A DNA stretch of 64,000 nucleotides from Mytilus trossulus (taxonomy: Eukaryota): assembly GCF_036588685.1 (NCBI RefSeq), contig NC_086384.1:48918001-48982000 (forward strand), in the 5' to 3' direction. Both the position numbers and the translations under genes were made by a program. The notes under the pieces were generated by a model that made no database searches, was not told where the DNA came from, and saw only the letters and a list, made by a program, of their open reading frames with translations. Positions 2,423-49,350 of the stretch are shown here, piece after piece (position 1 is the stretch's first letter; each line of letters starts with the position of its first letter).

Positions 2423-2652
2423 CCCGCTGATATCATCCCAAGCAGTACAAAATGACACATTATTTATCTTTCCATCTTCAAAATCGCCATTATGGGCTAG
2501 CTGGTTTCTGTAATACTTGATTCTTGCTACGTCAGCTGTTGGTGTTATATCAGTTCTCGGTGGTAACTGGTCATATCCACCGGTAGGTTGAGAAAGATTT
2601 GTCAGGTTCCGGAGTAATACTACCATTAAAGTTATATCAAAAGTCTCAGAAC
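2423..2652 (-). CDS. Gene A coding exon 2: C-terminal half of DZIP3-type HEPN domain (gene presumably continues beyond left window edge)
   Basis: Acceptor ttcacag|GT at 2653/2652, donor GGG|GTGAGA at 2423/2422. Reads (G)SETFDITLMVVLLRNLTN...ADVARIKYYRNQLAH...AWDDISG with R-x4-H motif. 230 nt, same length and phases as exon 2 of paralogs B and C. Confidence 0.85.
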
Positions 2653-3193
2653 CTGTGAATGCAATGCATGACTACAATTTTTTTTATGTTCAACATAAAC
2701 ACGTTTCCGTATATCTTAGTATTTCAGTTGATGAATTTGAGAATATTGATGAAAACCATTTATAAATTGATTTTAAATGATGACACACAACATGATGAAG
2801 TAAAATGAATAAATTAAATATGTTATACTATACTTATTTTTTTTTCGCGGGTACTTATTTTTGCGAATTGTGTTTTTTAAGCACGTTCACGGGTATTTAT
2901 TTTAGCGATTTTATAATTTTTGCCTTTCACTTGAAAGATTTGATTTGAATTCGCGTGAATTTTTTTCGCGATAATAAACCAACCGCAAAAATCTTGAAAA
3001 TTAGTACAATTACAGTATTCAAAAGAATAATATTTTTTTTAAAGAGATATAAATAAAAGGAGATTTGAGGTAGACGTCAATGACAGCAATTTAAAGATGT
3101 ACAGTGTACATGCATATATTCTTTTATTAATTTCAGAATTATGAAATATGAAAATAAAACTATGATAAACATTGGTAAAGTATATTTACCTAC

Positions 3194-3416
3194 CATTACA
3201 TGGAAACAGTAATTTCCATTGAGCTGCAGTAATGATACGTTTTGATTTCAAGTCTTTCAATTTTGTATATTCACTTCTTTTAATAGAGGCATTTAAGCAA
3301 GAAGGATGAAATTCTTTATCAAATAGTGCACGTACAGCCCTCGGTGAAATTCCATTCAACAACAGTTGCATTCTCAAAAAATTTTCTTCTTCCTGTGAAA
3401 CATGTGTAGTTGCCAT
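3194..3416 (-). CDS. Gene A coding exon 1: N-terminal half of DZIP3-type HEPN domain
   Basis: MATTHVSQEEENFLRMQLLLNGISPRAVRALFDKEFHP...AAQWKLLFPCNG, phase-1 donor G|GTAGGT matching the paralog B donor position. Probable upstream acceptor (caatttacag) near 3710 implies a 5' UTR portion and an upstream non-coding exon. Confidence 0.85.
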
Positions 3417-4541
3417 CGTGTTATTTAACAGCTCTTGGGCTGATTCTAATCTGTCGTGTTGTCTGCTAATACCAGGTTTTCACGTTTCCTACATCAGGTA
3501 ATGATTGTTTCGTCTCTTTTGTTGTTTTAATTTCCAGCATACAATGATGCGTTAACTTAATAACTTGGTAAGAAGTCCGACTATACACTGCTCAACAGAC
3601 CGGTATTTCGAGTTGTCCAGTGATATAAAATGTGAAATGATTTTTCCTCCTTGTCTCGAAAGTCTTATTGTTGAACTTCTTGAAATTTAGGATTCCAGCT
3701 GCTAGCTGTCTGTAAATTGAAAAAAAGGTATTTTTTTAACTGTTACCTTTGGCTTTCTGCCATTTAAACACTTACAAATTCACTAAATGACATACAATCA
3801 CTATATCATCATGAATTTGTACATCAAAATGTATATAGACAACCCTTAATATTCAATAGTAAATTTCATACTAAATGTTTTGACAGCAGATAGGAAAAAA
3901 GATAACTTTATATTACTTTTAGACGCAAGTTTGCATCGAAATTTTAGGTGAAATTTCAAATTTTGTTATCAATTCATTGATCCTAGGAATTTGAACAGAC
4001 AGATTTTTTAAAGGTATTTGACCGACATAACATCGACCCAGTGAGTAAGCACATCATAATATATAATGGCAAACGTGGAACTTAAAGTTATGAGAAAGCA
4101 ATAGAAATAAGCAACCGAGATGACAGATAATCGCAAATGATTCATTTTCTTTCATCAGAACAAAACTGCAGTAGAGTGCAGGATTTGGTTTATTATTTTG
4201 GAATGGGTTTAACTAAGAATAAAAAAAAAACAGCTGGTGTAAGACATCATTTCAGCTTAAGACAATTTTAGAAGTGACAATACAATGTAATCATATCATG
4301 GAGCTTAAATTAATATATATTATCATACTAAAAGATGTTTCTCACTCAGAATTGTATCTTTAATCTAAATATCATTAGATTTTTGGTATGATTTGTCTAA
4401 ATATAAGCAATCCTTTGCTTTGTCAAATACCATAAGGTAGCAATACACAGTTAACAAAAACAATTAAAATTGACACTCTTAATTTTTTAAAACCCTGTAC
4501 TATACATAAGGCTTAATATTTATGGTATGCATGTATATATC

Positions 4542-6136: not shown

Positions 6137-7080
6137 TATCTATAGAAAGAGAATATTTCATAGATTTGAAATTTTAATGGTCATAATGGAAAAAAAAGTC
6201 CTCTTGGGTGTAACCATGTAAACAATCTGCATTTCTTTGATACAAAATATAGCAAAAAAGGGGTATGAACATGTCACAAAAGTCTCCAAAATTTGGTCCC
6301 AAGGAAAATTTAATCAATTACAGTGATACCTTTCTTAAAACAATAGGTTTATATCTATCAATTGGTTAAAAAAAAATCATATGCATTTCTGCATGTTTTT
6401 CCATAAAATTGAATTGAATTGAGCGCAAAATCTCTGTTGATAAACACTACAATAATCTATGAACCTATGGGCCTATGGGCGGTAAGAATAATGAAATACG
6501 GACTGTCAAACAGAAAAATGGCATATAAAACATGCTAAAATAATCTAAACGTTCATATAAACCCACTAAAACGGTATATCATTCTTCAAGTATCTAAACA
6601 TTAAATTATTGAACAAAACCTCATATTTAACAAGAACTATCTTTAAAAAAGATATCCGACGTATTTAAATTTGAGTACAATTTAAAGCTATCATTTCGAT
6701 AGCCTTCAGAAGCACAATGACTTAATGATGCAGGACCTCTTTAATAAAATCTCCATCTGAATGTAAATGCAAGAAATTCTTTACTAAATCTGGTTATATT
6801 AAGGCAATAATATATAAGAATATTGTAATGACACCTAAAAAAATTATTTGTCAAAAAATCTAGTGCAAATAAAAAGGTACAAATATACATTTACTACTGT
6901 TAACATTAAACTTAATTCATGGTTAACAAAGCTAGAAACTATTGGTAGTATAAGTAGTATCTTTCTGTTAACATTCACCAAAACCCCGCGGAAATCTCAC
7001 ATGCGTAGGTGCGTTCTAAAAGTCATTAACGTTCGTACAAAACAACATGATGAAGTAAAATGAATAAATTAAATATGTTA

Positions 7081-7272
7081 TACTGTACTTAGTTTTTTTT
7101 CGCGGGTACTTATTTTTGCGAATTGTGTTTTTTAAGCACGTTCACGGGTATTTATTTTAGCGATTTTATAATTTTTGCCTTTCACTTGAAAGATTTGATT
7201 TGAATTCGCGTATATTTTTTTCGCGATAATAAACCAACCGCGAAAATCTTGAAAATTAGTACAATTACAGTA
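7081..7272. mobile_element. Small TA-flanked MITE (sister copy at about 2826-3018)
   Basis: TACTGTA...TACAGTA ends with internal tttt(t)cgcg repeats. Confidence 0.55.
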
Positions 7273-7447
7273 TTCAAAAGAATAATATTTTTTTAAAGAT
7301 ATATAAATAAAAGGAGATTTGAGGTAGACGTCAATGACAGCAATTTAAAGATGTACAGTGTACATGCATATATTCTTTTATTAAATTCAGAATTATGAAA
7401 TATGAAAATAAAACTATGATAAACATTGGTAAAGTATATTTACCTAC

Positions 7448-7670
7448 CATTACATGGAAACAGTAATTTCCATTGAGCTGCAGTAATGATACGTTTTGAT
7501 TTCAAGTCTTTCAATTTTGTATATTCACTTCTTTTAATAGAGGCATTTAAGCAAGAAGGATGAAATTCTTTATCAAATAGTGCACGTACAGCCCTCGGTG
7601 AAATTCCATTCAACAACAGTTGCATTCTCAAAAATTTGTTTTCTTCCTGTGAAACATGTGTAGTTGCCAT
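7448..7670 (-). pseudogene. Near-identical duplicate of gene A coding exon 1 (orphan or alternative first exon)
   Basis: 7042-7690 duplicates 2787-3436. Peptide differs only at EENF vs ENKF. Donor retained; the upstream acceptor was not copied. Confidence 0.8.
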
Positions 7671-10600
7671 CGTGTTATTTAACAGCTCTTAACAAAGCTA
7701 GAAACTATTGGTAGTATAAGTAGTATCTTTCATTCATCAAAACCCCGCGGAAATCTCACATGCGTAGGTGCGTTCTAAAAGTCATTAACGTTCGTACAAA
7801 AAAGTTTACATTAAAAATTATATAATTATATAATTGTCCCGAATAAACAGCTGTCATGGATGCAAAAAGCTATTGGAAAAACAATTATTTTAATAAAAAT
7901 ATGAATCTTTGAAAGATCTAGTTCAAATATTTATAGTTTTTCACTTGCTTTCCATCACGATATAATTTTCGAGACGTTTTTTCAAACACAACCAAATCAC
8001 CCACCGTTACAGCATTTTGTCCAATCACAGAAAGGATTTTCGAGCATGCGTAGTCTGTAGCCATAGTGAAGCGTCCTTAAGTTCAAAGTGCACAAACCGA
8101 AAGTATACCGACTACGTCGTAAAAAATTCACAGGGGCCATAATGCGAAACTAAACTTCTAACTGTGTATTGCTATCTTAACTTGTTACCTTTATTGTCGT
8201 GAAAAACAACAATATCAACGTTTTACGGCCTGTAACGCGATGACGTTACCTTTATTTCGACGTTTTGGATTTGGAATGATGGTTACCGTAAAAACGGTCG
8301 GTGACCATATTTTTAATTTGAATCGTTAAAACGGAAATTTAAATATCAACATATATTTTTTTTCTAAGAAACATCTATGCAGTCGAATTAGAGATTTGAC
8401 GATTCAAAGGCAGTTCACCGGTATACCACCATCTTGAATGACAGTAATTATTCAGAATGTTTCAGTGCTCAAATCATCAAATTTGGCGACAGATTTGCAA
8501 TTTATTGGTTTAACTGTTTATGTATACAAAGAAAACTTGGTCATTCCTCGTATTATCAAAAATATTTTAACAAATACCAAGTATTTATGCCTCAATTAAT
8601 TTTTCAAGTAAGCCACTAAAGTGGAGATACCTGTTTTACTACAAAATTTATACTGGACATATAAGGAAATTATCCTTTTTTATTTGTAGCTAGAAAACTA
8701 GTTCGGTGACACCCTTTTTTTGCTTTTTGTTTTCTTAAAATATATTACACAACCTATTTTCTCATATGTATTAGAAAAAATATGTGCATTTTCACGAACA
8801 ATCTACGCAAATTTTGGCAATTTTGAACGACTCGTACCATGAAAAATAACATTTTATCATTTTTTTTTAAGTATAGTAAAATCTTCATTTTTGCAAGGTA
8901 TTAGAAACATTTTTTCTTATACCCCTGAGCTTTTTGAAGACAGATTTAAGTAGTTTTTTCATCGATTTTAACGTGCTTTCTATACTAATGATCATTCGAT
9001 CAGTAAAATTCAAATGATAATTTTGAAATAAATGCATTATTTTTACATTTACTGTTATTTGATCTCAATTCTTGAACCAAATTGTTTAGCTGATATAGTA
9101 ACTATGATAATTTTTATAATACTTTATTTATAACAAATAAAGTAATAATATGAGGCCTACATTACAGACGAATGCAGTCCTAATGTGTACAGCAAGCTAA
9201 TTTGATAACCAGTCATTTGGACTGGTCAAAGTTAACCTCTGACCGGATTTAGGACTGCTCATACCAATCCTAGGACCAAAATCTAGTTAACTTAAAAAGC
9301 GGTCCTTGGACTGTTGTTATGTCTGCTAATACGTTAACTTGGAAACAGGTCCGCTATTGACAGGATTGTTTTAAGTTAACTTCGATCTAGTCCTGTCATA
9401 AGTCAACATAAGTTAACTTCGATACCAGTCCTACCGTAAAGTTAACATAAGCTTACTTCGGAACCAGTCCTGTATAAGGGGACGAAGTCTGTATGAATTA
9501 CTTTCTGTAACTTATAAATCTGTTAAAAAAGAAACAGAAATACCGTAACGTTTCCAAATTTATTGTTCTGTTGTTAGGGATTTCACTTGTGACGTTATTT
9601 AACTGATGACGTCATGTTCAATGTAAACAAAAAAACGCAATACACCAAAACGTTAATTAATATCAAAGACAAAGAATTATTAAAAATGAAATATTGGTAT
9701 TGTGTTCCTTGAGTTCCCATATTTTCCTAGACTACTCAATGTTTCACGACAACGAGACTGGACGAATAAAGTAGATTTCTGCGTTCTGCGCAAATGCGGG
9801 AATTAAAAAAGCTACAATCTTTTTTTAACGATTTTGATTTCATTAGTACAATGAAAATTCGATTTAAAAAAAAAAAAAATTATAATTGATTTTTCTACTG
9901 TAATAATCTACTTTGTTCCCACATATTATAGTATTTGTTTTCTTAAAAAGAAATATCCCATATCTAAAGTAACTCTCAAATTAATTAGGTATATCTATTC
10001 AACTGATACAGTATCTGAGGTAAAAATATGAAAATGCCACATGATCACATGGAGGTTAGTATATCATAACAATACAAATCTGTTTTTTTTTTGGCACTTT
10101 TCATTTTTTTCGCTGTTTAATAATTATCAATCGATTTAGCGACAGCAAACCCAGGTACAAACTAAACCAGAAAGAAACACGTCAATTATAGGAGGCAAAC
10201 AAGAAAACAAACGAAACACTGGCTTGCAACAAAAAATAAACGTCAACACACAAAAAAAATGGACTATATGATAACAACTGAAATAATTCTAACATAATAC
10301 AGGACAATCTAAGACAAATATGGAGGGCTAGGACAATCTACGACAAATATGGAGGGTTGAACCTGGTTTTATGACTTCTAGCCGAACCTCCCGCTAATCA
10401 TGCAATAGTAGATAACCGCTAAAATGACAACCTTACTTGACAAAAATACAGTACAAACAAATGCAAGAACCTTCAGCACAGAGAACACATTAACGAATAG
10501 TATACTAGTTCGTTACAACATGTGAACCGCTGTATCACATGTATCATTCATATAGAGCATCAAAGTTTAGAATGTTCGACACTGAGTAAAGTAAATGTCA

Positions 10601-11302
10601 TCTGCATTTAGTAAATCACAGATGACAGGGACATGTTCATTAACTGTACGGAAATATTTGACAGAAAGAAATGGTTTATATGATAAATCGAAGGTCAAGA
10701 TATTATTATATCACATGATAAATCGAAGGTCAAGATATTATGATATCACATGATCATGTTAATTTGGTTATCAGGTTATCATGGAAATGCATGTGAATGA
10801 ATAGATAAGTGTTATCTTTCTAAATAACACTCAGCAATATGAACACATTCCTCGTAGATACCAGGTTGTCACATGCATATTTCCTTGTGTATCTCGTTAA
10901 GGATCATATATTTATTGGGTATCGAGAAACTAATAATGTCTAAATAAGTAGGGTTAATGTATATGTGTGCGGCAATAAGTCACATTAGACATTATGATTA
11001 AATCCTAGGCAATAATAAAGCTAACGTCTAGGCATTAAGTCATTGCCTGGAATTTTCAGGACTTAACCTTATTTCCTGAAATCTGATGATGATTATTCAT
11101 CCAATTGCCGAACATAATTTTAGGTAATAAGTAAACTGTGGAATGTATGCATATTGGGTGATTTATTCTTGATATTAAGCTGTTTCTTAATTACATTTCT
11201 AATAGTACATGTATAAACATACATCCATTTGACAGATCCTCATGTTGGGACAAGTCAGTATTAATTTTATCATGATTTCTGTCATAAGAACATCTTATAT
11301 TA

Positions 11303-14300
11303 GATGCCTCTGCTGGTGGACTATTAGTCCCCGAGGGTATCACCAGCCCAGTAGCCAGTACTTCGGTACTGGCATGAAAATACGGATTATTTTGTGTTAT
11401 TAAAATTTGCCGTTACAAAATATTAGAAATTATTATTAATTAAAGAATGTATCTCCCTCATGCAAAGCTCTGATTCCTTTCACGAATTTGGCTATACTTT
11501 TTGGACCTTTTGGATTATAGCTCTTCATCTTTTATATATGCTTTGGATTTCAAATATTTTGGCCACGAGCATCACTGAAGAGACATGTATTGTCGAAATG
11601 CGCATCTGGTGCAACAAAATTGGTACCGTTGATTTTATTACTACCACTGGGTCGATGCCTCTGCTGGTGGACTATTAGTCCCCGAGGGTATCACCAGCCC
11701 AGTAGCCAGTACTTCGGTACTGGCATGAAAATACGGATTATTTTGTGCTATTAAAATTTGCCGTTACAAAATATTAGAAATTATTATTAATTAAGGAATG
11801 TATCTCCCTCATGCAAAGCTCTGATTCCTTTCACGAATTTGGCTATACTTTTTGGACCTTTTGGATTATAGCTCTTCATCTTTTATATATGCTTTGGATT
11901 TCAAATATTTTGGCCACGAGCATCACTGAAGAGACATGTATTGTCGAAATGCGCATCTGGTGCAACAAAATTGGTACCGTTGATTTTATTACTACCACTG
12001 GGTCGATGCCTCTGCTGGTCGACTATTAGTCCCCGAGGGTAACACCAGCCCAGTAGCCAGTACTTCGGTACTGGCATGAAAATACGGATTATTTTGTGTT
12101 ATTAAAATTTGCCGTTACAAAATATTAGAAATTATTATTAATTAAGGAATGTATCTCCCTCATGCATAGCTCTGATTCCTTTCACGAATTTGGCTATACT
12201 TTTTGGACCTTTTGGATTATAGCTCTTCATCTTTTATATATGCTTTGGATTTCAAATATTTTGGCCACGAGCATCACTGAAGAGACATGTATTGTCGAAA
12301 TGCGCATCTGGTGCAACAAAATTGGTACCGTTGATTTTATTACTACCACTGGGTCGATGCCTCTGCTGGTGGACTATTAGTCCCCGAGGGTATCACCAGC
12401 CCAGTAGCCAGTACTTCGGTACTGGCATGAAAATACGGATTATTTTGTGCTATTAAAATTTGCCGTTACAAAATATTAGAAATTATTATTAATTAAGGAA
12501 TGTATCTCCCTCATGCAAAGCTCTGATTCCTTTCACGAATTTGGCTATACTTTTTGGACCTTTTGGATTATAGCTCTTCATCTTTTATATATGCTTTGGA
12601 TTTCAAATATTTTGGCCACGAGCATCACTGAAGAGACATGTATTGTCGAAATGCGCATCTGGTGCAACAAAATTGGTACCGTTGATTTTATTACTACCAC
12701 TGGGTCGATGCCTCTGCTGGTCGACTATTAGTCCCCGAGGGTAACACCAGCCCAGTAGCCAGTACTTCGGTACTGGCATGAAAATACGGATTATTTTGTG
12801 TTATTAAAATTTGCCGTTACAAAATATTAGAAATTATTATTAATTAAGGAATGTATCTCCCTCATGCATAGCTCTGATTCCTTTCACGAATTTGGCTATA
12901 CTTTTTGGACCTTTTGGATTATAGCTCTTCATCTTTTATATATGCTTTGGATTTCAAATATTTTGGCCACGAGCATCACTGAAGAGACATGTATTGTCGA
13001 AATGCGCATCTGGTGCAACAAAATTGGTACCGTTGATTTTATTACTACCACTGGGTCGATGCCTCTGCTGGTGGACTATTAGTCCCCGAGGGTATCACCA
13101 GCCCAGTAGCCAGTACTTCGGTACTGGCATGAAAATACGGATTATTTTGTGCTATTAAAATTTGCCGTTACAAAATATTAGAAATTATTATTAATTAAGG
13201 AATGTATCTCCCTCATGCAAAGCTCTGATTCCTTTCACGAATTTGGCTATACTTTTTGGACCTTTTGGATTATAGCTCTTCATCTTTTATATATGCTTTG
13301 GATTTCAAATATTTTGGCCACGAGCATCACTGAAGAGACATGTATTGTCGAAATGCGCATCTGGTGCAACAAAATTGGTACCGTTGATTTTATTACTACC
13401 ACTGGGTCGATGCCTCTGCTGGTGGACTATTAGTCCCCGAGGGTATCACCAGCCCAGTAGCCAGTACTTCGGTACTGGCATGAAAATACGGATTATTTTG
13501 TGCTATTAAAATTTGCCGTTACAAAATATTAGAAATTATTATTAATTAAGGAATGTATCTCCCTCATGCAAAGCTCTGATTCCTTTCACGAATTTGGCTA
13601 TACTTTTTGGACCTTTTGGATTATAGCTCTTCATCTTTTATATATGCTTTGGATTTCAAATATTTTGGCCACGAGCATCACTGAAGAGACATGTATTGTC
13701 GAAATGCGCATCTGGTGCAACAAAATTGGTACCGTTGATTTTATTACTACCACTGGGTCGATGCCTCTGCTGGTCGACTATTAGTCCCCGAGGGTAACAC
13801 CAGCCCAGTAGCCAGTACTTCGGTACTGGCATGAAAATACGGATTATTTTGTGTTATTAAAATTTGCCGTTACAAAATATTAGAAATTATTATTAATTAA
13901 GGAATGTATCTCCCTCATGCATAGCTCTGATTCCTTTCACGAATTTGGCTATACTTTTTGGACCTTTTGGATTATAGCTCTTCATCTTTTATATATGCTT
14001 TGGATTTCAAATATTTTGGCCACGAGCATCACTGAAGAGACATGTATTGTCGAAATGCGCATCTGGTGCAACAAAATTGGTACCGTTGATTTTATTACTA
14101 CCACTGGGTCGATGCCTCTGCTGGTGGACTATTAGTCCCCGAGGGTATCACAAGCCCAGTAGCCAGTACTTCGGTACTGGCATGAAAATACGGATTATTT
14201 TGTGTTATTAAAATTTGCCGTTACAAAATATTAGAAATTATTATTAATTAAGGAATGTATCTCCCTCATGCAAAGCTCTGATTCCTTTCACGAATTTGGC

Positions 14301-14307
14301 TATACTT
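11303..14307 (+). mobile_element. Non-LTR retrozyme-type tandem array: about 8.6 copies of a 351-bp unit carrying a type I hammerhead ribozyme (8 cores)
   Basis: Exact 351-bp period. Eight copies of GCATCA-CTGAAGA-GACA(TGTAT)TGTC-GAA-ATGCGCAT-C^TGGTGC. Confidence 0.9.
11569..11612 (+). ncRNA. Minimal type I hammerhead ribozyme (first of eight; others start at 11920, 12271, 12622, 12973, 13324, 13675, 14026)
   Basis: Core CUGAnGA...GAA...UH, stem I GCAUCA/UGGUGC, stem II GACA/UGUC, palindromic stem III AUGCGCAU. Predicted cleavage after C11606 (AUC). Confidence 0.9.
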
Positions 14308-18272: not shown

Positions 18273-21200
18273 TTATTTAAACACGTATAAATGTTTTTTT
18301 TCCCTTTCTAGTAACAGCTGTACAATGTTATCATATCCTTTACGACTTGCCACAAACAATGGAGATGATTCATTATCCATACACAAATCACTGTCTGCAT
18401 TGTTGTCTATTAGCATCTTTACTATATATATATTACCTTCCACAAGCCACAAACAAAGGAGAGACTTCACCATACATACACCTATTAATATCTGCCTTGT
18501 TTTCCAGTAACAACTTTACTATATTTGTGTGTCCTTCCTGACAAGCCACAAACAAAGGCGAGGCTTCATCATACATACACTTATTAATGTCTGCCTTGTT
18601 TTCCAGTAACATATTTACTATATCTGTGTGTCCTTTCTGACAAGCTATAAACAAGGAAGAGGCTTCATCATCAAAACACTTATTGATGTCTGCATTGTTA
18701 TCAAGTAACAGCTGCACTATATTTCTAAATCCTTCATGACAAGCAACAAATAAAGGAGATGCTTCCTTATCGTTACACTTATCAATGTCTGCCTTGTTGT
18801 CTAGTAACAGCTTGACTATATCTTCGTATCCTTTTTGACAAGCAATAAGTAAGGGGGATATCTCATTATCCATGCATTTATTAATTTCTGCTTTGTTGTC
18901 TAGCAACAGTTGTACTATATTTATATGTCCTTCTTGACATGCAATAAACAAGGGGGATATCTCATCAACATTACACTTGTTAAAGTCCGCCTTGTTATTA
19001 AGTAACAGATGGACTATATCTTTCTGGTTAAACTCACACGCTACATACAAGGGAGATTTTTCACATGTATTACACTTATTAATGTCTGCCTTATGGTCTA
19101 GTAACTGTTGTACTATATCTGTATGTCCTTGCTGACAAGCAATTAAAAAGGGAGATGCTTCGTTATCCTTACATTTACTGAGGTCTGCATCACTGTCTAG
19201 TAATAGTTGTACTACATCTATATGTCCTTCCTGACAAGCAATAAACAAAGGAGATGCTTCATTATCCTTACATTTATTGATATCTACTTTGTATTTTAGT
19301 AACAACTTTACTACATTTGTTTGTCCTTGCTGACAAGCAATAAAAAAAGGAGATGTTTCATTATCCTTACATTTACTGAGGTCTGCCTCATTTTCTAGTA
19401 ACAAATGTACTATATCTGTATGTCCTTCCTGACAAGCCATGAACAAAGGAGATGCTTCATCATTCATACACTTATTGATATCTGCTTTGTTTTTTAATAA
19501 CAACTGCACTATATCTTTATGTCCTTCCTGACAAGCAATAAATAGGGAAGACGCTTCTTCATCGGTACATTTATTAATATCTGCTGTGTTGTATAGTAAC
19601 AGCCGAACTATAACTATATATCCTCCATTACTAGCTATGAATAAGGGAGAAACCTCATGATCCATACATTTATCAATGTCTGCCCTGCTGTCCAATAACA
19701 GCTGTACTATATCTGTATGTCCTTCCCGACAAGCCATAAATAATGGAGATTGTTCATCATCGTTACACTTATTGATATCAGCTTTCCTTTTTAGTAAAAG
19801 CTGTACTACATCTATATGTCCTTCCTGACAAGCAATGGATAAGGGGGATGTATCATTATCTTTACACTTATTACTGTCTGCATTGTTATCTAGTAACAAC
19901 TCTACTACATCTTTATATCCTTCCTGACAAGCCATAAACAGGGGCGATGCTTCATCATCTGTATACTTATTCATGTCTGCCTTGTTTTCCAATAGCATCT
20001 TCACAACTTTAGTATGCCCTTCTTGTGATGCTACATGTAAAGGACTCAAACCATCATTTTTACACAGATTAATATCAACACAATGATACAAACACCACTG
20101 AATGAAAGAAATGTCTCCTTTAAAACAACACTGTAAAAGAACACTATCGTTGTCAGTGTCATCACATGTTTGTGCTAGTTGTCTCTGATTTGAAATATCA
20201 AGGGTATTTAAATGACACAGAAATCGTCGTCTGAACTTTGGTATATCCATATTGATATTATTAAACACATCAATTACCTTCCCACAAGACCAGTCATTGA
20301 CCATTCTCTGTATATACATTTGGTGGTATTCAGGGGGAACTATAGTGACGAGTTGGTCACTGTCTTTTTCTATCTCTAATAAAAAACGTTCCATAATAAA
20401 TCCACTATTTGCATTCTGGATTAAAAAAATGGGCATTTTTTTTCCAAAATAATACGATAAAATATCAAACAGTTTATCGTGTAAAGTTCTGTAAACACCA
20501 TGTTCCTTTCTTATGAAGGTTTGCTCAAGTGAATCAAGTTCATCTAATAAGATTGACCTAGACGTACTTTTGTCCAGTCTACATGCCTCAAAAGTGTTCT
20601 CAATTATGCGTTTCGTTTTTTCATCTATTTCCTCTGTCAACACTTCGTTTGTAAAATTATTATTAAAAACAATACACAATGCTATTGCACAGTATTTACC
20701 AAAATTTTTATTCTTTTTCAGATGTTCCATCTCTTTTTCATACACTGAAAATGGATTCTGAAAAAAATCTTCAATCTTGAGTTCAGAATTAACATTATAC
20801 AATTTACAGAGCAATGGGAAACAATCATTTAAATCAGAATACTGAATAATCTTAGAAGCGTCATCTTTCAGATATGACTCTGCAATTAACTGTTTTTCCG
20901 TTTTTGACAAGCATAAGTCTGCTGATAACAAGTTGCATGTATTGGTTCTGAAAATTGATAAGGATTCGAAGTGTTCATCTTTGTAGACTTGTAATCTGCA
21001 GGCAACAATAATTTTTGTGAGTTTATTGTTATTTCCAGTTAATTCTTTAATACGTTTTATGACTGATTCCCAGATGTTTACATCGGATTGGTTTATTGAA
21101 AATGTTCCACAAAAGTCATCAATAACAAACAATGTTTTCTGATTTGGATTACAAAACTGAACGATTTCATGAGGATTGGTTACTAGTAATGCATCATACC

Positions 21201-21380
21201 CGTCTCCAATCATTTTCAAAACCACATGCCGGAGGGTTGCTGTCTTTCCAACACCAGAACTAGCAGTAATAGTTACACAACTATGTTTCCTGATTAATTC
21301 TAGCACATGTTTTGCAGCACTAGTTTCCACAAAATTAACATCATCTTTTTTCCACTGATCAAGTATCTGACGGAATTGTA
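18273..21380 (-). CDS. Gene B terminal exon: nSTAND3-type P-loop NTPase, helical region, about 18-19 ankyrin repeats; frameshift near 18440
   Basis: Acceptor tttag|TA at 21381/21380. Walker A variant ASSGVGKT, Walker B LFVIDDFCG, IIVACR sensor-like motif, 33-aa repeats SPLFxACQEGHxDIVxLLLxNxADINKC. ORF stops at 18433 but ankyrin text resumes in another frame to 18273. The ORF-track N-terminus (21381-21537) is intron. Confidence 0.9.
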
Positions 21381-22416: not shown

Positions 22417-22513
22417 CTGCAAGGTTCCAAGGTACTGTTGATTGGTCTAAATGTTTTGTTCTTAGCTCGTTACATTCCTCAACTGTTTCTTGATCACCTA
22501 GTCTTCTTATAGC
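22417..22513 (-). CDS. Gene B coding exon 3 (97-nt linker exon)
   Basis: tag|GCT...GCA G|gttagg, AIRRLGDQETVEECNELRTKHLDQSTVPWNLA. Phase 0 in, phase 1 out; homologous to 44443-44539. Confidence 0.85.
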
Positions 22514-24405: not shown

Positions 24406-25187
24406 ACATGACAGGACTGCAAAACAAACAAATGGGAAAAATTATAGGACAGAGAAATAAACGAATAATAGTCAACAAAAGGCACCAGGCTAAAAATTTA
24501 AAAAACCAGACGCGCCACGTCCACACAAGACAATAAGAATACTTTATTAAATACAATTAAAGGGTAAGTTTCCAAGGATTTAGAGTTATTAATTTTACAG
24601 TATTTAACGATACATAACATTGACAAAAACCAATAAATAAGTTTCCTCCATACAAGATGTTGTTTTAACATGTTTAATGGATATCGGTCAGTAACAAGAG
24701 GATATACTTTGATTAACATATGTTAATGCAAATGAATGGTAAGCCTTCCAAGAACAAAGTCACCAAAATACTAAAATCCGAGAAAATTCAATCGGAAAGT
24801 CCATATTGACACGGCAAAATCAAATGACAATACACATCAAACGAAAGGACAACTGTCATATTTCTGACTTGGTACAGGCATTTTCAAATGTAGAAAATTG
24901 AAGATTGAACATAATTTCATAGCGCTCAACCTCTCACCTGTATTACAATCTCATCAAATTTCGTTATATTTACACATTTACACTGAAAAAAAAAAAAAAC
25001 AAATATGAAAAAAAAATAAAAAAAAAGAAAAAAATATTTACACATTGAACAAAACAGACATGATAAATTGAATAAGAAAAATATGGATACAGCAGTCGTC
25101 ACAACTGTGTTATAATCTTATACAAACAGTTTTACAAAAAAGCACAACAGCAAATGTAAACGTCACAAAGGAAGAAATTGTCGAAAT

Positions 25188-25430
25188 AAGCTTTGGATTT
25201 CAAATAGTTTGGTCACGAGCATCACTGAAGAGACATGTATTGTCGAAATGCACATCTGGTGCACGAAAATTGGTACCGTTAATTTTATTACTACCACTGG
25301 GTCGATGCCTCTGCTGGTGGACTATTAGTCCCCGAGGGTATCACCAGCCCAGTAGCCAGTATTTCGGTACTGGCATGAAAATACGGATTTTTTGTGTTAT
25401 TAAAATTTGCTGTTACAAAATATCAGAAAT
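25188..25430 (+). mobile_element. Solo partial copy of the 351-bp retrozyme unit
   Basis: Close match to the array unit. Hammerhead at 25219-25262 has stem III mutated to ATGCACAT. Confidence 0.85.
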
Positions 25431-26644: not shown

Positions 26645-27203
26645 GGTATCACCAGCCCAGTAGCCAGTACTTTGGTACTGGCATGAAAATACGGACTTTT
26701 TTTATTACCAGTTCAGTAGTCAGCACTGCGCAATTTCCTGTTAACAAAACTTGAATTTTTGAAAAACTATGAATTTTCTTATCCCAGGCATATATAACCT
26801 CAGCCGTATTTGACACAACTTTTTTTGGAATTTTGGATCTGAAATGCTCTTCAACTTTGTATTTCTTTGATTTGATATGAACGTCACTGATGAGTCTTAT
26901 GTAGACGAAACATGCGTCTGGCGTACTAAATTATAATCCTGGTATCTTTGATAACTATTTGTATCATTAAAATTTGCTGTTACAAAATGTAAGAAAATAT
27001 TATAAATTATAGAATGTATTTCCCTCATGCAAAGCTTTAATTCCTTTCACGGATTTTGCTATACTTTTTTTAATCTTTTGGATTATAGCTCATCATCTTT
27101 TATAAAAGTTTTGGATTTCAAATCTCTTGGCCACCAGCATCCCTGAAGAGACATGTATTGTCAAAATGCGCAACTGGTGTAGGCAAAATGGTACCGTGAA
27201 TGT
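26645..27203 (+). mobile_element. Decayed 351-family retrozyme unit with a second-family retrozyme fragment nested inside
   Basis: 351-family sequence stops near 26700 and resumes near 26960. The insert carries a hammerhead at 26881-26924; the host hammerhead near 27137-27180 has lost GAAA. Confidence 0.75.
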
Positions 27204-27226
27204 TATCAGATAACTGATATTCTTAC

Positions 27227-27456
27227 CCCAGTGATATCTTCCCATGCCATTGTAAAGAATGGTGTATTCATCTTTCCGTTTTAAAGATGAGCTAACTGGT
27301 TTCTGTAGTACTTGATTCTTGCTAAGTCAGCCATGGGTGTGGTTTCAGTCTTCACTGGTAATTGGTCATATCCATCTGCAGGTTCAGGAAAATTTGCAAG
27401 GTTTCTGAGTAATGTTATCATTAATGTCACGTCGAAAGAATCCGAGCTAGGTGCAC
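27227..27456 (-). pseudogene. Gene B coding exon 2 (HEPN C-half) with in-frame TAA
   Basis: Acceptor ttag|GT, donor GGG|GTAAGA. Reads (G)APSSDSFDVTLMITLLRNLAN...ADLARIKYYRNQLAHL*NGKMNTPFFTMAWEDITG. TAA at 27281-27283 where paralog C has AAA. Not in the ORF track. Confidence 0.85.
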
Positions 27457-29725: not shown

Positions 29726-29963
29726 CATCACGGCTAAACAGTAAATTCCACTGAGCTGCGTTAATAACATGTTTCATTTTCAAGTCAGACAGTTTTCTAT
29801 ATTCCTTTTTAATGGATGAATTCAACCGAGAAGGATGAAATTCTTTATCAAACAATATACGCACAGCTTTCGGACAAGTTCCAGCCACCAATAAATGCAT
29901 TCTTAAATAATTCTCCTCTTCCACTGAAACATGTGCCACACATGAAACATTGGCAGTTGTCAT
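29726..29963 (-). CDS. Gene B coding exon 1 (HEPN_DZIP3-like N-half)
   Basis: MTTANVSCVAHVSVEEENYLRMHLLVAGTCPKAVRILFDKEFHP...INAAQWNLLFSRD, donor G|GTAAGT at 29726/29725. Confidence 0.85.
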
Positions 29964-39280: not shown

Positions 39281-40126
39281 ACTCTTGATTTCTTATTCTT
39301 TAGCAAAAATAGATACAAAAAACATATAGATCAATCACAAACCAACAAAAAACATAGAACTACTAGCTCTTGGCTAGAGACTGGCCAAACAATTTAAGAT
39401 ATTCCATTTTAGCCGTAAAACATACCACTTTATGCAAGACATTACAAGAACGTTTTGGATACTAATTTGAGTGAGCATTTATAGTTAAACATTGCATGTT
39501 TGCAGAAATATACTGATTAAAAATATTTACAAACACATTATATGTAGTAACCACGTTCGTACTAATTTTAAATAGCATTTCAACTGAACTTTTTTTTTAT
39601 TATTATTTTTACAAAAATAAACTCCAAATCTGTTGAATGCCAGTATACATTGAAAGATCAGGAATCCTCTAATTTGTTTCATTTATGTAACCGTTTTAAG
39701 TATAAGGTAGCAGTATTTGTTCAATGTTTTTATACTCTCTTTGACTGGACAGGTATTTCGAAAAGTCAAACATTCATGGAAAAGTGATTATTGAACATCA
39801 ATTATGTTTGGATTTCATATTATGTCTTTCTTATATTGTTGAGGTTTGAGAGTGTTCTAGTACTGTATTAATAATGATCTCAAATTGTCTTATCGTTAAT
39901 GATTATAATCATTGATACTACAGACATAATGAAAATCCACTCCATATAACAAAATTCCGTTTGTAACTTGTTTTCTGTATCCTTTTGAATCAAAAACATA
40001 TTACTAATTTATAGAGCATCAAGAGACATCGAATTGCGCATCTGGTGCGGGACAATTGGTACCGTTAATGCATATTATAATGACTTAGTACAACGACAGT
40101 AATACATATATATATATATATATATA

Positions 40127-40948
40127 TCAACCCAACAATGTTAGATCTGTAAATTTGCTTTCGCAAATTTTTGGTTCTTCCCTCGCCGGGATTCGAACCC
40201 ATGCTACTGTGATATCGTGACACCAAATCGCCTGCACTGCAGCCGTCCCGCTAGACCACACGACCACCTGGGCTCTCAAAAAAAGAGCTTTAGGTGGCCA
40301 TATGTTACCTTTCCACGTCAGTTTTAATCTAGCGGCGTACTACAGTACATGATATATAAGGCATGAAGATGTTATTGTTACAGATCAGCTAAATTATCTA
40401 TAGTAAAGGATCCTACAAATTAATGTAAGATACAGTCACAGAAAATAATCATATTCATAAGTACGTCTGAGTCAGTGACAACCCTACAACAGATGTATCC
40501 ATCGGATCGCCATCAATGATGGTGATACATGGCTGTGTACATAATGTATATACAACTCGTCTAAACATCAACCCAACAATGTTAGATCTGTAAATTTGCT
40601 TTCGCAAATTTTTGGTTCTTCCCTCGCCGGGATTCGAACCCATGCTACTGTGATATCGTGACACCAAATCGCCTGCACTGCAGCCGTCCCGCTAGACCAC
40701 ACGTGTGGTCTAGCGGGACGGCTGCAGTGCAGGCGATTTGGTGTCACGATATCACAGTAGCATGGGTTCGAATCCCGGCGAGGGAAGAATTAAAAATTTG
40801 CGAAAGCAAATTTACAGATCTAACATTGTTGGGTTGATGTTTAGACGAGTTGTATATACATTATGTACACAGCCATGTATCACCATCATTGATGGCGATC
40901 CGATGGATACATCTGTTGTAGGGTTGTCACTGACTCAGACGTACTTAT
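40127..40948. mobile_element. tRNA-headed (SINE-like) 441-bp unit in partial tandem plus a 492-bp fold-back palindrome, bounded by (TA)n
   Basis: tcaacccaacaatgttag recurs at 40127 and 40568. B box GGTTCGAATCCC (minus, 40188-40199) and A-box-like GTGGTCGTGTGG. Palindrome 40457-40948 centred on 40702/40703. Confidence 0.8.
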
Positions 40949-41048: not shown

Positions 41049-43353
41049 TTACATGTTGGAATATTTAAGAATCAAAGTCACTATATCATTGTGTCCTTTT
41101 TGAGTGGCTATTTGCATGGGTGTGGTAAAATTAAGTCCGTCTTCACTTGCACAAGTATTGATATCTGCTCCTTTTTCCAGTAATATTTTAACTATTTCTG
41201 TATGACCTTCACGACAACCTGCAAATATAGGAGAAATACTACCTCTACACATATTTATGTCTGCCTTGTTATCCAGTAACACTTTTACTATATCGACATG
41301 ATTATATCGACAAGAAACAAACAATGGAGATTCCCCATTATCTGGACACTTATTTATGTCTGCATTGTTTGCTAGCAACAGCTTCACTATATCTACATGA
41401 TTATATTGACAAGCAATATGTAAGGCAGATTGCAGACCATCTAAGCATTTATCTATGTCTACTTTGTGACGCAGTAAAAGCTCTACTATATCAAAATATC
41501 CCCTTTCACAGGCAGCAAGTAAGGGCGATTCTCCACCATCATCACACATATTTATGTCTGCTTTATTGTCAAGCATGATCTGAACTATATCAATGTTATT
41601 CTTTTGACAAGCCACACACAGTGGAGATGTTTCACTATTACTACTCTCATTAATGTCTGCTTTGTTTTCAATTAACAATTTTATTATACCAACATGATTA
41701 TTTTGACAGGCTAATAACAGAGGAGTATATCCGCAACTGTTACATTCATTAATATTTGCTTGGTAAGAAATTAACATTTTTACGATATCTATGTAACCTT
41801 CTGCACAAGCAACACACAGGGAAGTTAACCTATCATAATTTCTTGCCTGATCAACATTTGCCCGGTTTTCAAGTAATAGTTTTACTATATCTGCATTATT
41901 ATACAGACAAGCCCCAAACAGGGGAGATGTTCTATCAAATTTGCATTTATTAATATCTGCTTTGTTGTCCAAAAGGATTTTTACAACTTGAGTATAGCCT
42001 TCCTCTGATGCTACAAATAAGGGACTTGTACCATCAAACCTACAAAGATTAGCATCAACTTCTTGATCACAACACCATTCAGTATAGGTTTGTCACCTCT
42101 AAAACAGCATTGTAACAAGACAGTATCATTTGAACTGACACAACGGGTATGAGCTAGTTGTCTTTGGTGTGATTCATCAAGTGTGTTCAAATGAATTAAA
42201 AGTGTCTGTCTGAACTTTGATTGTTCCATGTTGTTATTAGCGAAAACATGCATTACATTCCCAATTGACCAATCCTCGACTAATCTTTGTATGTACATTT
42301 TATGGTATTTAGGTGGAACAATTGTGATGAAGCTGTCCATGTCGTTTTCTCTTTCAAATAAAAATCTTTCCATAATAAGATTACTGTCTGCATTCTTGAT
42401 TAAACACTGAATCATCTGTTTTCCAAAATAATAAGATAAAAAATCGAAAAGTTTATCATGTACAGTTTTGTATACCCCGTGTTCTTTTTTTATGAATGTC
42501 TGTTCAAGCGAATTAAGTTCATCTAATAGGGATAATCTCGATGTTCCCTTATCTAATCTACATGCTTCACATGTGTTCTCGATGACTGTTCTTGTTAATG
42601 TACTTATCTCCTCTGTTAACATTTCTTCCGGCAGTGCATTGTTTTTAAGGACACACAAAGCCAGTGCACAGTATTTAACGAAGTGTCCCTTCTTCTTTAG
42701 TTGTTCCAACTCTAATTCATACACTGAGAATGGATTTTTAAAGAATTCAGTATCTTTTAGGTCAGTATTATCATGATACAATTTACACAGTAGTGGAAAA
42801 CAATCATATTTATCACAGTATTGAATTATATCTGCAGCTTCTGTTCCTAGATATAAGTCTGCTATTGATTTCCTTTCCGATTGCAACAAGCATAAGTCGT
42901 CTGATAACAAATTACAAACAGTGGTTCTGAAAATTGTCAAAGATTCAAATTTTTCGTCTCTATACACTTGTAACCGACAGGCGACGATGATTTTGGTCGA
43001 TTTGTTTTGAATGAATTTTTCAACACGCTTGATAACTGTTTCCCAATTGTTAAGGTCAGAATAATTTACGGAATAAGTTCCACAAAAGTCATCCATAACA
43101 AACAATGTCTTCTGTTCTGGATTATAAAACTTAATAATGTCATCTGGATTTGTTACTGGTAGTACATCATAACCATCATTCGCCATTTTCAAAAATGAAT
43201 GCTGGAGTATTGATGTCTTCCCAACACCAGAACTAGCAGTGATAGTAACACAACTGTTTTCCATTATACATTTAAGCACATGTTTTGCTGCTCTGGTCTC
43301 TACAAACAATGCATCATTCTTCTTCCATTGATTCATTATCTGACTGAACTGAA
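41049..43353 (-). pseudogene. Gene C terminal exon: nSTAND3-type NTPase plus about 10-11 ankyrin repeats, split by a 1-nt frameshift near 42085
   Basis: Acceptor attacag|TT, with ASSGVGKT and LFVMDDFCG motifs. After GDKP the frame homologous to gene B continues TEWCCDQEVDANLCRFDGTSPLFVASEEGYTQVVKILLDNKADINKC into ORF 41049..41972. Confidence 0.88.
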
Positions 43354-43383
43354 CTGTAATATCAAAACAAACGTTTTATTTAT

Positions 43384-44442: not shown

Positions 44443-44539
44443 GTCTTATGTTCCAAGGTACAGTTGATTGGTTTAAATATTTTGTTCTAAGCTCCTTGCA
44501 TTCCTCCGCCATTTGTGAACCACCTAGTCTTTCTACGGC
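44443..44539 (-). pseudogene. Gene C coding exon 3 (97-nt linker exon)
   Basis: tatag|GCC...AGA C|gtaagt, AVERLGGSQMAEECKELRTKYLNQSTVPWNIR. Confidence 0.85.
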
Positions 44540-44980: not shown

Positions 44981-45107
44981 CACAAAAAGAGAAAGGAAAG
45001 ATACCAGATGGACAGTCATATCATCAATCGAAAATAAGCTGACAACGCAATGGCTAAAAGACAAACAGAAAAAAAACCAATAGTACACTTGACACAACAT
45101 AGCTATA

Positions 45108-45504: not shown

Positions 45505-46499
45505 CAGACTGACAGTATATAACTGACAGTTGTTTCATATCTCAAACATATTTGTAAAACAAGAGTTGACATTGATTCTTTTATGTATTGACATTTTATT
45601 AGTAGTCACTGTATTTTGAAATCAACAAAGACGTAATGTTGAACTTTGAAGGAAAACATGGACTTGCTTGAACTAAATTCTTATATTTCTATGTCTTTGT
45701 GCTAACACATATATTAAAAACTCTTCTACGGTTAAGTAACAACAGTTTCATGAAATATTACAGTCAGTCTAAATCTAAACAGTAGCTACCGACTAAGTCC
45801 CATGAAATTTATTTTCGATGATTTTGTTTACAGAATATTCTAAACAAGAATTGTATGACCTGCATTTACTGATTATTATCAATGATCCATGGAAATGATA
45901 ACTTACAATATTGCCATGCACCAAGCATACCTTTTTATGTAAACTATTATTTTGCACATTGAACCTTGAAAATTTTTGAACGGACCAGAGGCATATACAA
46001 GATGAAACCCTTAGCTGATAAGGCATATGTTTCCATGAAATGAAACATGTCGGCATTCGACCTTCTTATTATAAAAGCTTTTAGGCAAATAGTTTTCGCC
46101 ACCGCGGTTGACCTAATTGTATCCAAACCGATTGTATTCTGATGTTTTTTAATCCAAGATTGCGGATGACAACACACTACTGTTTGTTTAGAGTTACTTG
46201 TCTTAAATTTACACTATTTGCTACTGTAATCGCAAACTATTCCGGATGTTACGAAATTACAAAAAAAAATAAGTTCATGATTTTTACAACCAACTGAGCT
46301 ACACAAAACCTTTTTTTTATATACCTAAAGTATCTGTCCTATGGTTACACAAATGTAATTTGTTTTTAATTTAAATTTTGGTCTACCCCAAAAATTTTCA
46401 TATTTATCTGAAAACTTCATATGATCATGATGATATATACATATAAAAAATACAATTACTTTAGACAAAATGCTAGAGAGGACTATACATTATAATTAC

Positions 46500-46729
46500 C
46501 CCTTTTATATCCTCCCAGGCAATCAAGAAGAAAGGAGATGTGATTTTCATATCTTTAATATGAGCTAGCTTGTTTCGGTAGTATTTAATTCTTGCCAGGT
46601 CGTCTGTAGCTGTGATACCTGTTGGCGATGGTAAATTATCATATCCCCCTGCAGGTTGAGGTAAGTTTGTCACGTTCCTGATTAATGCTACCATTAATGT
46701 CACATCAAACGTCTGAGATGTTATAGAAC
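46500..46729 (-). pseudogene. Gene C coding exon 2 (HEPN C-half, RNKLAH)
   Basis: tatag|GT acceptor, GGG|GTAAT donor, 230 nt, open frame (G)SITSQTFDVTLMVALIRNVT...DDLARIKYYRNKLAHIKD...AWEDIKG. Confidence 0.85.
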
Positions 46730-47698
46730 CTATAAATACACTAAGCTTTTAGTTAAATGAATTTATGAAATGATTTATAAATCATCAGCGATAAAAAAAA
46801 ATACAAAAGAGAATATTGAAGCTAATAAGGCAATGAAAAAATTACAACATGTTATGCGAAAAGGCAAGTTAATTTCAACTCCACATTTGACATTCGTTTT
46901 GTTACTCCTAAAATAAGAATTGAAGTTATATCAATTAATCAACTTGATAATCGACACACCTTAAAATAAAACCACAATGACTATTTATATAAATGTAAAT
47001 AATCTATCAGTGAAACTTGGCTTATTATTCAATTTTGAAATAGAAATACGTTATTCGGGAAAGACAGGACTGTTAACCATCAAATCAAAACAAAAGCAAA
47101 ACATATTATATGTAACTTTGTTTAAATTATTAACACATTCAAAAAGTAGAATTTACAATAAACCCAGGAAGGTATTACATGATTGTTTATGATGGAAATA
47201 GAAATTGAAACAAAATTCACCATAGCTTTTGCCTATTTTAAGTGTTTCGATTGTGCCCATTTTGATTGATTTGCAGGAACAAAAAAAATAGGTAATTCAT
47301 AATAGATAGAACAAGGTAAACTTAATATCTGTTAAGTGTGATTGGTGGTTTCTTTCATTCTAATTTTGCCATTCAAATTTCGTTATAAGTCCGATAAAAA
47401 AGGTACATTCGCTGTACGTTTGTTACTTTGTTTTCACTCACCACCTTTTGGTTAACAATTTATCAAACAAATGATTAAAAGGTAATCTCTATATATCGTC
47501 AGTATAGATAAAAATGTAAAATATTTTCGTTTCAAAGCTTTAAGAGAAAAACGAAGACACAACAGACAAAATAATATTTTCCACACGAGAGGCGAAACAT
47601 ACCAAAGGTTGATGAAAACTAATAACTTGAAGTCAAATATAAACGGACAACACGTTGGCTACCAATAGTTTTCAAAGCTACCAGGATTAAAATTTAGT

Positions 47699-47742
47699 AC
47701 GCCAGACGCGCGTTTCGTCTACATAAGACTCATCAGTGATGC
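47699..47742 (-). ncRNA. Type I hammerhead ribozyme, second family, within retrozyme-like copy at about 47665-48025
   Basis: Minus strand GCATCA-CTGATGA-GTCTTATGTAGAC-GAA-ACGCGCGT-C-TGGCGT. Core intact, one stem I mismatch. Confidence 0.82.
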
Positions 47743-49110
47743 TAATATCAAAATATTCAAAAAGCCAAACAAGTACGAAGTTTAAGAGCATTGAGGATTC
47801 AAAATTACAAAAAGGTTGCCAAATACGGCTAAGGTAATCTATTCCTAGGATAAAAAAAAAATCGTAGTTTTTCGAAAAATTCAAAGTTTAGTAAACAGTA
47901 AATTTATAAATATGACCACATATTTAATATTCATGTCAACACCGAAGTGCTGGCTACTGTGCTGGTGATACCCTCGGGGACGAAACGTCCACCATCAGTG
48001 GCATCTACCCAGTGGTGTAAATAGTAACCAAACGGCTTATTGCATTTTCAGTTTGTTGTAATTATTTATGTTTACTCTTGTTATACGTTTGTTATATACG
48101 AAATAAGCAACGTCGTTTAAGATTAAAAAAAAAAAACGATTAACAGATTATCATTATCATCGTACCGACGAAAGCAATAAAACAATTATTTTTGTGATGT
48201 TCAACGATAATCTAAAATTACATATGTATATTTGTATACACAGTTTTGGAAATATGTTTATCCTTCTTCCAAATATGTAGGTTTTTTTATTCCATATATC
48301 TGTTTATCAAAAGATATCAAGACGACATTGACCTAAAGAATTTCAAGAATTTTTATCCGAACGATTATTCAAATAAAAGGTATCATCATCTTGTAAGACG
48401 TTGTGTAGTTGAACCAGCAAACAACTCGTCCATATACAGGTTGCACGAAAGACGATTACAAGAATAAATTATAATATGAAGGAAAAAATCAGCAGTTACA
48501 ATGTATGTGGTATTTCATACTCGCTGTTTTATAGATCTTACTTTAAATATGGGGATCAAATGCATATAAACACTCCCTGCAGTTAATATCAACGGTTAAT
48601 TTTTTATGGCGTACAGTCCACAAATTATGATATTTTTGATAATGCTTAAAATTGCACAGCATTATCAAATCTTGGGTCTACTGTATTCTTATTTAGCTTT
48701 CGTAATTTCTTGTTGGCATGTAGATCTTTTATTTCCTCTAATTTAAATGAGAAAACATTCAAAATAATGTAATATAAGAAACTTTTTGCCAAAAGTAAGA
48801 TAACAAAATACCGAAGCTAGCCAACTCGTTAACCCTCTCAATTTAATGATCATCGCATGAATTTCCGTTATATTGTTAAACAGGTGTGAACAAAACGATC
48901 AGACATAACAGATAAACATTTCCGAAATGGGACTACAGCAGTCTCTATTCTGTTATAATCTAAATCACTATAGAATTAAGCAAATATGGCAACAACAAAA
49001 AAGCATAAAGACAAGGCATATAAGTTAAAAGGAAAACCAAGAACTCAAACATTAACCTTAAGAAAATAACACGATGGCGGGATGACTTAGTTGTAGAATT
49101 TTAAACCAAC

Positions 49111-49350
49111 CTCCACGGGGAAATAGTAACTACCACTGTTCTGCGTTAATAATATGCTTCTTTTTTTTAAGTCATTCAGTTTTTTAAGTTCCTTTTTGAG
49201 TGAAGATGATAAGCAGGAAGTGTGAAATTCTCTATCAAATAGTACACGCACAGCCCTCGGAGAAATACCAATCAGCAACACATGCAGTCTCAAATAATTA
49301 TCCTCTTCCTCTGAAACATGTGATACGGATATGGCATTGCAAGTTGTCAT
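49111..49350 (-). pseudogene. Gene C coding exon 1 (HEPN N-half), frameshift plus stop
   Basis: MTTCNAISVSHVSEEEDNYLRLHVLLIGISPRAVRVLFDREFH. Frameshift in the A-run near 49161-49168; the homologous frame continues KHIINAEQW*LLFPRG with TAG at 49130-49132. Donor G|GTTGGT. Confidence 0.85.

Follow-up and report, generated by a model that had tools for sequence, protein, structure and literature searches.

Three tandem HEPN-STAND-ankyrin paralogues in Mytilus trossulus, from a very large family of candidate sensor RNases

We analysed a 64,000-nt stretch of the Mytilus trossulus genome (C12:48918001-48982000, from an assembly of 1.30 Gb; G+C about 31%, N = 0), called the window hereafter. It holds three tandem paralogues, named A, B and C, from a very large Mytilus family of tripartite proteins in which a HEPN domain, a STAND NTPase and an ankyrin array are joined. 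All exons of the three copies are carried by the minus strand. Four exon types were located in the copies by stop-to-stop translation and by tblastn between copies, and the exact exon boundaries were set via flanking strings. An earlier examination of the same DNA (the original prediction) had described a tandem gene cluster here, and the tandem paralogy was borne out. Protein identity among A, B and C was 60-72% in every exon or domain compared. At this pairwise level, the copies are old paralogues and not recent duplicates.

The three copies share one gene model. Exon 2 is 230 nt and exon 3 is 97 nt in 3/3 copies, and the coding part of exon 1 is 223 nt in A, 238 nt in B and 240 nt in C. AG was found at all acceptors and GT at the start of all donors. 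Exon 4 starts at 21380 in B and at 43353 in C, each time preceded by a pyrimidine-rich tract. These boundaries confirm the four-exon splice model that had been proposed with a 230-nt exon 2 and, for B and C, a 97-nt exon 3; the latter length applies to A too. The proposed phases 1/0/1 hold across the copies, except for exon 1 of C, which is out of phase. The motif IKYYRN[Q/K]LAH, claimed for all three copies, is present in every exon 2, at 2492-2521 (A), 27287-27316 (B) and 46560-46589 (C), and its core reads RNQLAH in A and B and RNKLAH in C. The possibility that the HEPN open reading frames (ORFs) are separate small genes was considered and rejected. A single gene is indicated by the phases, by the constant exon sizes, by a RefSeq model and by the dozens of full-length homologues already annotated.

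We compared the exons with Pfam, and the claimed HEPN_DZIP3, nSTAND3 and Ank domains were recovered exon by exon. Exon 2 matched HEPN_DZIP3 (PF18738) in 3/3 copies (E = 2.5e-17 to 7.9e-23; 63-81 bits against a gathering cut-off of 27). A weak match to the N-terminal part of the same profile (positions 1-37; for A, 4-35) was given by exon 1 of B and by both copies of exon 1 of A, with E of about 5e-3, and the Pfam scan gave no HEPN_DZIP3 match for exon 1 of C. Exon 4 of A, B and C matched nSTAND3 (PF20720; E of about 1e-26 to 1e-28; 92-98.6 bits against a cut-off of 27.2). The Walker A sequence SSGVGKT is found in A, B and C, and Walker B reads LFVIDD in B and LFVMDD in C. Ank stretches in exon 4 number 26 in A, 16 in B and 9 in C.

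Canonical animal NLRs combine a NACHT NTPase with an LRR sensor, whereas the NTPase here is nSTAND3 and the repeats are ankyrin. Pfam scans of the copies' exons gave neither NACHT (PF05729) nor any LRR family at E <= 0.1. In PADLOC, the NTPase matched the candidate defence system PDC-S73 (E = 1e-12 to 1e-14) and, weakly, mad8. The original prediction had regarded the cluster as a candidate counterpart of Avs. This link is weak: the nSTAND3 label is common with Avs5, yet no PADLOC Avs model matched the NTPase at E <= 0.01.

Judging from frames and splice sites, copy A alone may be functional. The coding part of its exon 1 (3194..3416, minus strand, 223 nt) begins with an ATG at 3416, encodes the N-terminal HEPN helices and ends in phase 1 at the donor GTAGGT. 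Exon 2 (2423..2652, 230 nt, AG/GT) is an open frame with the HEPN core and the motif (HEPN_DZIP3, E = 7.9e-23). Exon 3 (557..653, 97 nt, AG/GTAAGA), which encodes the last HEPN helix, was located by tblastn. It lies inside the window, below the point at which the original prediction began, and had not been found there. Exon 4 lies outside the window on the same strand, at C12:48902849-48906954 (L005:4849-8954), about 11.6 kb beyond exon 3. It has a good acceptor ending in a T-rich tract, stays open for 1368 codons and matches nSTAND3 and ankyrin, the latter about 26 times. All four exons of copy A are open, with canonical splice sites and with R-N-x3-H and Walker A intact, and the predicted product has about 1552 residues. 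Exon 1 is also part of a 650-bp segment that recurs as a duplicate 4.25 kb upstream (7042-7690 against 2787-3436, about 98% identical). The duplicate of exon 1 (7448..7670, minus strand) has equal length and an equal donor, and it may serve as an alternative first exon.

In copy B, all four exons were found on the minus strand. Exon 1 (29726..29963, 238 nt) has the donor GTAAGT, is in phase 1 and gives the weak N-terminal HEPN_DZIP3 match. Exon 2 (27227..27456; HEPN_DZIP3, E = 2.5e-17) contains the HEPN core and the motif, and an in-frame TAA at 27281-27283 sits two codons past the motif His. Exon 3 (22417..22513, 97 nt) is bounded by AG and GTTAGG. Exon 4 (18436..21380) is open over 982 codons up to the stop at 18433-18435, and it encodes nSTAND3, with Walker A at 21241-21261 and Walker B at 21115-21132, plus a helical/winged-helix region and some 16 ankyrin repeats. 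The codon of the TAA is AAA (Lys) in a near-identical second cluster described below. The stop differs by a single T/A change from this 99.5%-identical copy, so that a segregating allele or an error in the assembly may explain it.

Copy C, also on the minus strand, is by its reading frames a decayed pseudogene. Its exon 1 (49111..49350, 240 nt) is degenerate, with the wrong phase, a weak donor (GTTGGT), a frameshift at the A8 run 49161-49168 and, in the conserved frame, a TAG at 49130-49132. Exon 2 (46500..46729; HEPN_DZIP3, E = 3.6e-21) keeps the HEPN core with its motif, and exon 3 (44443..44539, 97 nt) is contained in the RefSeq protein P0006. Exon 4 (41052..43353) encodes nSTAND3 (Walker A 43214-43234) and then about nine ankyrin repeats, with a frameshift near 42075-42090. 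P0006 (544 aa), the product of RefSeq LOC134692528 and encoded in the window, matches copy C residue for residue across the exon 2/3/4 junctions. It starts with a Met at 46692-46694, takes in what remains of exon 2 and the whole of exon 3, crosses into exon 4 at a split Leu codon and ends at the frameshift stop at 42014. Thus, an independent annotation shares the same junctions, though for a truncated protein. Just downstream of the last exon of copy C, two adjoining minus-strand ORFs at 40068-40789 encode a near-identical peptide of about 40 aa.

The pseudogenisation proposed for this cluster was thus seen in B, with its nonsense codon, and in C, whose exon 1 has both a frameshift and a stop and whose exon 4 is frameshifted. 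The proposal of a set of three genes held for the domains and exons, which are present in each copy. It did not hold for the reading frames, since only A is open, and A needs its exon 4 from outside the window.

About 387 kb away, at C12:49305072-49410000, the whole cluster is present a second time in colinear order, corresponding to positions 1-47255 of the window. The non-coding DNA of the two clusters is 99.2-99.6% identical, and the satellite length and several indels differ. The lesions differ as well: exon 4 is frameshifted in A' and broken in B', which has AAA where B has TAA, and C' is more broken than C. Every copy in both clusters bears lesions of its own, and this speaks for turnover. 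Either a very recent segmental duplication gave rise to the second cluster, or the assembly has retained two haplotypes (haplotigs). Different null lesions in two near-identical clusters would be an example of the presence/absence and pseudogene polymorphism that is thought to shape mussel immune repertoires. Alternatively, the two clusters are a warning about retained haplotigs in the assembly.

An array of a 351-bp satellite occupies 11303-14307. It consists of eight monomers, and every monomer contains an ATG-initiated plus-strand ORF of 72 aa; the second cluster has a shorter version of the array. Fragments of the satellite lie near 25166-25340 and 26652-27326, in introns of copy B. Rfam gave no family at gathering score in the whole window, and none at E <= 1 in 11250-12400.

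We then considered the family to which the three copies belong. A first-pass search of the genome gave 582 candidate HEPN_DZIP3 loci and 595 candidate nSTAND3 loci; among the 582, all of the 150 that were scored were above the cut-off (150/150). M. trossulus, M. edulis, M. galloprovincialis, M. californianus and M. coruscus all have annotated full-length proteins of the HEPN_DZIP3-nSTAND3-ankyrin type, under names such as 'uncharacterized', 'ankyrin-like', 'DZIP3-like HEPN domain-containing' and 'Novel STAND NTPase 3 domain-containing'. A HMMER search of the full library with the NTPase of B gave 1154 clusters at 50% identity, 289 of them at E <= 1e-30. Among the best 150 representatives, the named clusters that were looked up, down to 26% identity, were all bivalve, from Mytilus or the clam Tegillarca.

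The catalytic-type and nucleotide-binding residues are well conserved in this family. R-N-x3-H is kept in 80/81 homologues bearing PF18738, so the R-x4-H motif is conserved family-wide, as the original prediction needed. Across an alignment of 68 sequences the Arg never varies, and conservation of the Asn and His is 90% or more. The Walker A Gly-Lys (G279, K280) and the Walker B Asp (D322) do not vary there either. Gene structure is less uniform. In a paralogue at C1:55321501-55328500 the entire HEPN, with R-x5-H spacing, lies in one exon (L010:707-1318), and an nSTAND3-ankyrin exon follows about 2 kb downstream. This single-exon HEPN means that intron content varies within the family. A search for proteins derived from transcripts that link HEPN with the NTPase gave back P0006 alone, and the single Logan member that was found, P0292, starts at exon 4.

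Fold models were made from stand-ins for the window copies, namely the homologue P0054 and the single-exon HEPN paralogue on C1. The AF2 model of P0054 (HEPN + nSTAND3, 641 aa, 68-row alignment) had a mean predicted local distance difference test score (pLDDT) of 86. Its top Foldseek matches were the NLRP3 NACHT, the ZAR1 and NRC4 resistosomes, NOD2, Apaf-1, Dark, NLRC4 and Avs4 (E of about 1e-5 to 3e-4, probability 1.00). The model has a module of nucleotide-binding domain, helical domain and winged helix as in NLR/Apaf-1, and Pfam places the ankyrin arrays next to it. The STAND fold that had been claimed is thus supported by the predicted structure of a homologue.

Support for the claimed HEPN fold is weaker than for the STAND fold. 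The AF2 model of the C1 HEPN alone (Pfam E = 1.9e-31) had a pLDDT of 87.7. In an exhaustive VIA search its best match was Csm6 (4rgp; Z = 7.4, root-mean-square deviation 3.4, 113 aligned). Further matches were AbiF (8vz6, 5.8), Csm6 (6tug, 5.6), Swt1 (4pqz, 5.3), AF0298, Csm6 (5yjc), sacsin, 1wwp and Cas13. HEPN domains occupied VIA-wide ranks 1-4, 7, 9, 15, 16 and 18, with Z of 4.8-7.4. This enrichment of HEPN domains is modest support for a HEPN fold in the predicted model, not proof of it.

Earlier in silico work on bivalves (PMC3710099, PMC9646362) already put forward a HEPN effector combined with an NLR-like STAND protein. The 2013 study PMC3710099 lists the DZIP3/hRUL138 HEPN family in its Table 1 as 'mostly conserved' for Rx4-6H. 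It reports animal fusions of DZIP3-type HEPN with ankyrin, NACHT, CARD, DEATH, LRR and TPR, as well as lineage-specific expansions in Nematostella and oyster. In pearl oyster, PMC9646362 (2022) describes HEPN_DZIP3 + NACHT genes in tandem, haplotype-variable arrays, with more than 50 bearing an N-terminal HEPN and with Rx4-6H in 194/202; its authors suggest that these proteins sense in an NLR-like way and degrade RNA from viruses and transposons. Surveys of cnidarians and corals (PMC8260672, PMC10236652) found the HEPN fusion to be the commonest NACHT partner. HEPN, STAND and ankyrin modules were reported in bivalve lineage-specific expansions by PMC8195603, which also introduces the nSTAND names, and nSTAND3 was reported in bacterial Avs5 (bioRxiv 10.1101/2025.07.08.663546). 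We found no paper on the Mytilus nSTAND3-ankyrin branch in the literature searched.

The mussel proteins resemble the bivalve and cnidarian HEPN-NACHT proteins in having an N-terminal HEPN_DZIP3 with Rx4H, a central STAND and C-terminal repeats. Both also occur in tandem arrays, have undergone lineage-specific expansion and vary in copy number between haplotypes, and for both a role in degrading RNA of viruses or transposons has been proposed. However, the mussel NTPase is an nSTAND3 without a Pfam NACHT match, and the repeats are ankyrin, not LRR, TPR or WD40. With bacterial Avs (SIR2-nSTAND3-repeats in Avs5; Avs4, 8dgf), they share the layout of effector, STAND and helical-repeat sensor. A nuclease-type effector is frequent in Avs, Avs5 carries the same Pfam nSTAND3 label, and Avs4 is among the structural matches. 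In contrast, the mussel effector is HEPN and not SIR2, Mrr or another Avs type, and the genes are eukaryotic genes with introns.

RNase L and Ire1 (KEN-type) are also HEPN RNases activated by ligand-driven dimerisation or oligomerisation, and the ankyrins of RNase L are its ligand sensor. Their domain order is reversed, however, with a pseudokinase or kinase instead of STAND and with KEN instead of DZIP3 HEPN, and they are single-copy conserved genes whereas the mussel family numbers hundreds. RNase L is a useful functional analogue of the proposed mussel sensor RNases. Human DZIP3 (hRUL138), an RNA-binding E3 ligase, belongs to the same Pfam HEPN family, PF18738, but it combines HEPN with RING and other modules and has neither a STAND NTPase nor an ankyrin array. 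Csm6/Csx1 and AbiF, the best structural matches of the HEPN model, are dimeric R-x4-6-H defence RNases. Their sequence identity to it is only 8-10%, and they are activated by cyclic oligoadenylate via CARF, or by non-coding RNA, and not through a fused STAND switch.

HEPN RNases require dimerisation, and their active site is a composite of both partners; examples are Csm6, Cas13, RNase L and Ire1. STAND NTPases oligomerise upon ligand binding. By analogy with such systems, we consider it somewhat probable that the family encodes ligand-gated HEPN-STAND-ankyrin sensor RNases. The ankyrin array would bind a ligand, whether pathogen, damage or non-self, and binding would release the NTPase switch so that the STAND modules oligomerise. 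The oligomer would bring the HEPN domains together, and two R-x4-H motifs would make up a composite RNase site. This site would cut viral, transposon or host RNA and give an antiviral or cell-suicide output, and the cluster would evolve by birth and death.

Several observations weigh against a sensor RNase. The role of the ankyrin repeats as ligand sensor is suggested by analogy only. Foldseek returned nothing at E < 1 for the HEPN-only model, and the VIA Z scores are all below 8, a range flagged as common for helical bundles. The literature searched contained neither a demonstrated RNase activity nor a biochemical test of any DZIP3-type HEPN, nor a biochemical test of a HEPN-STAND protein from any animal. 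At the locus itself, copies B and C are, as far as their frames tell, unable to make a full protein, and the RefSeq model of copy C may rest on homology. A sense-oriented non-long-terminal-repeat retrotransposon, a long interspersed nuclear element (LINE), lies within intron 3 of copy A at C12:48909981-48913803 (L001:1981-5803, minus strand; Exo_endo_phos, E = 6.5e-12; RVT_1, E = 1.9e-26), and it is also present in the second cluster. A collection of 5.8 billion sequences held no protein more than 70% identical to exon 4 of A, and the same was found for B; copies A and B are apparently not annotated as coding.

The main rival explanation keeps the STAND oligomer and takes away the nuclease: the HEPN domain would be an RNA-binding or homotypic adaptor, as has been suggested for the HEPN of sacsin and for human DZIP3, and the oligomer would signal via partners. 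The N-terminal position of HEPN mirrors that of the Death, CARD and PYD adaptors of NLRs, and the lack of an RNase assay of a DZIP3-type HEPN in the literature searched would fit as well. For the isolated sacsin HEPN, RNA binding and not cleavage is reported in recent work. However, the Arg, Asn and His of R-N-x3-H are nearly universal across very divergent paralogues, as expected for a catalytic site. The motif is interpreted as an active RNase site in PMC3710099 and PMC9646362, and the best structural matches, Csm6, AbiF and Cas13, are active nucleases. We regard a non-catalytic HEPN as unlikely. A different doubt concerns the locus and not the mechanism. None of the three copies might make a working receptor, and the cluster would then be the decaying residue of past duplications. 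The nonsense codon of B, the three lesions of C, a RefSeq model confined to the truncated C product and the breaks in A', B' and C' are all in keeping with such a graveyard. The missing database relatives of A and B, and the roughly 11.6 kb with a sense-strand LINE between exons 3 and 4 of A, point the same way. But all four exons of A are open, with its splice sites, R-N-x3-H and Walker A preserved, and the stop in B, whose exon 4 is still open, may be allelic or an assembly error. With these points set against it, a wholly dead locus seems quite unlikely.

It may also be that the mechanism is as proposed but that its targets are retrotransposons, allorecognition or transmissible neoplasia cells instead of pathogens. 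LINEs and satellites are abundant in the genome and lie right inside these genes. Transposons were raised as triggers in PMC9646362 and PMC8195603, infectious tumour cells were raised in PMC8195603, and strong copy-number and presence/absence variation between pearl oyster haplotypes was described in PMC9646362. However, the nearest STAND systems to have been characterised, NLRs and Avs, are pathogen sensors, and our data are equally compatible with any target. We consider such a restriction to internal or conspecific targets very unlikely.

A more ambitious form of the sensor RNase reading is only tentative. Intact members such as copy A might be resistosome-type RNases and the first animal STAND receptors with a direct RNA-cleavage output, and their nSTAND3 might share ancestry with Avs5-type proteins. 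If true, the Mytilus repertoire of about 600 loci would be a germline-encoded recognition library, with the ankyrin arrays as the variable sensor. HEPN-STAND proteins make up some of the largest of the expanded 'immune-like' families that bivalves, corals and anemones have. The exon and lesion map given here separates usable candidates (copy A and many intact paralogues) from the dead copies B and C, and this aids the choice of constructs for RNase, ATPase and oligomerisation assays.

Beyond the three copies, a plus-strand ORF of 273 aa with a TTG start lies at 56552-57373, and it has no Pfam match at E <= 0.01. A short peptide encoded at 57578-57631 resembles sequence downstream of exon 1 of copy B. 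This likeness suggests a dispersed repeat.

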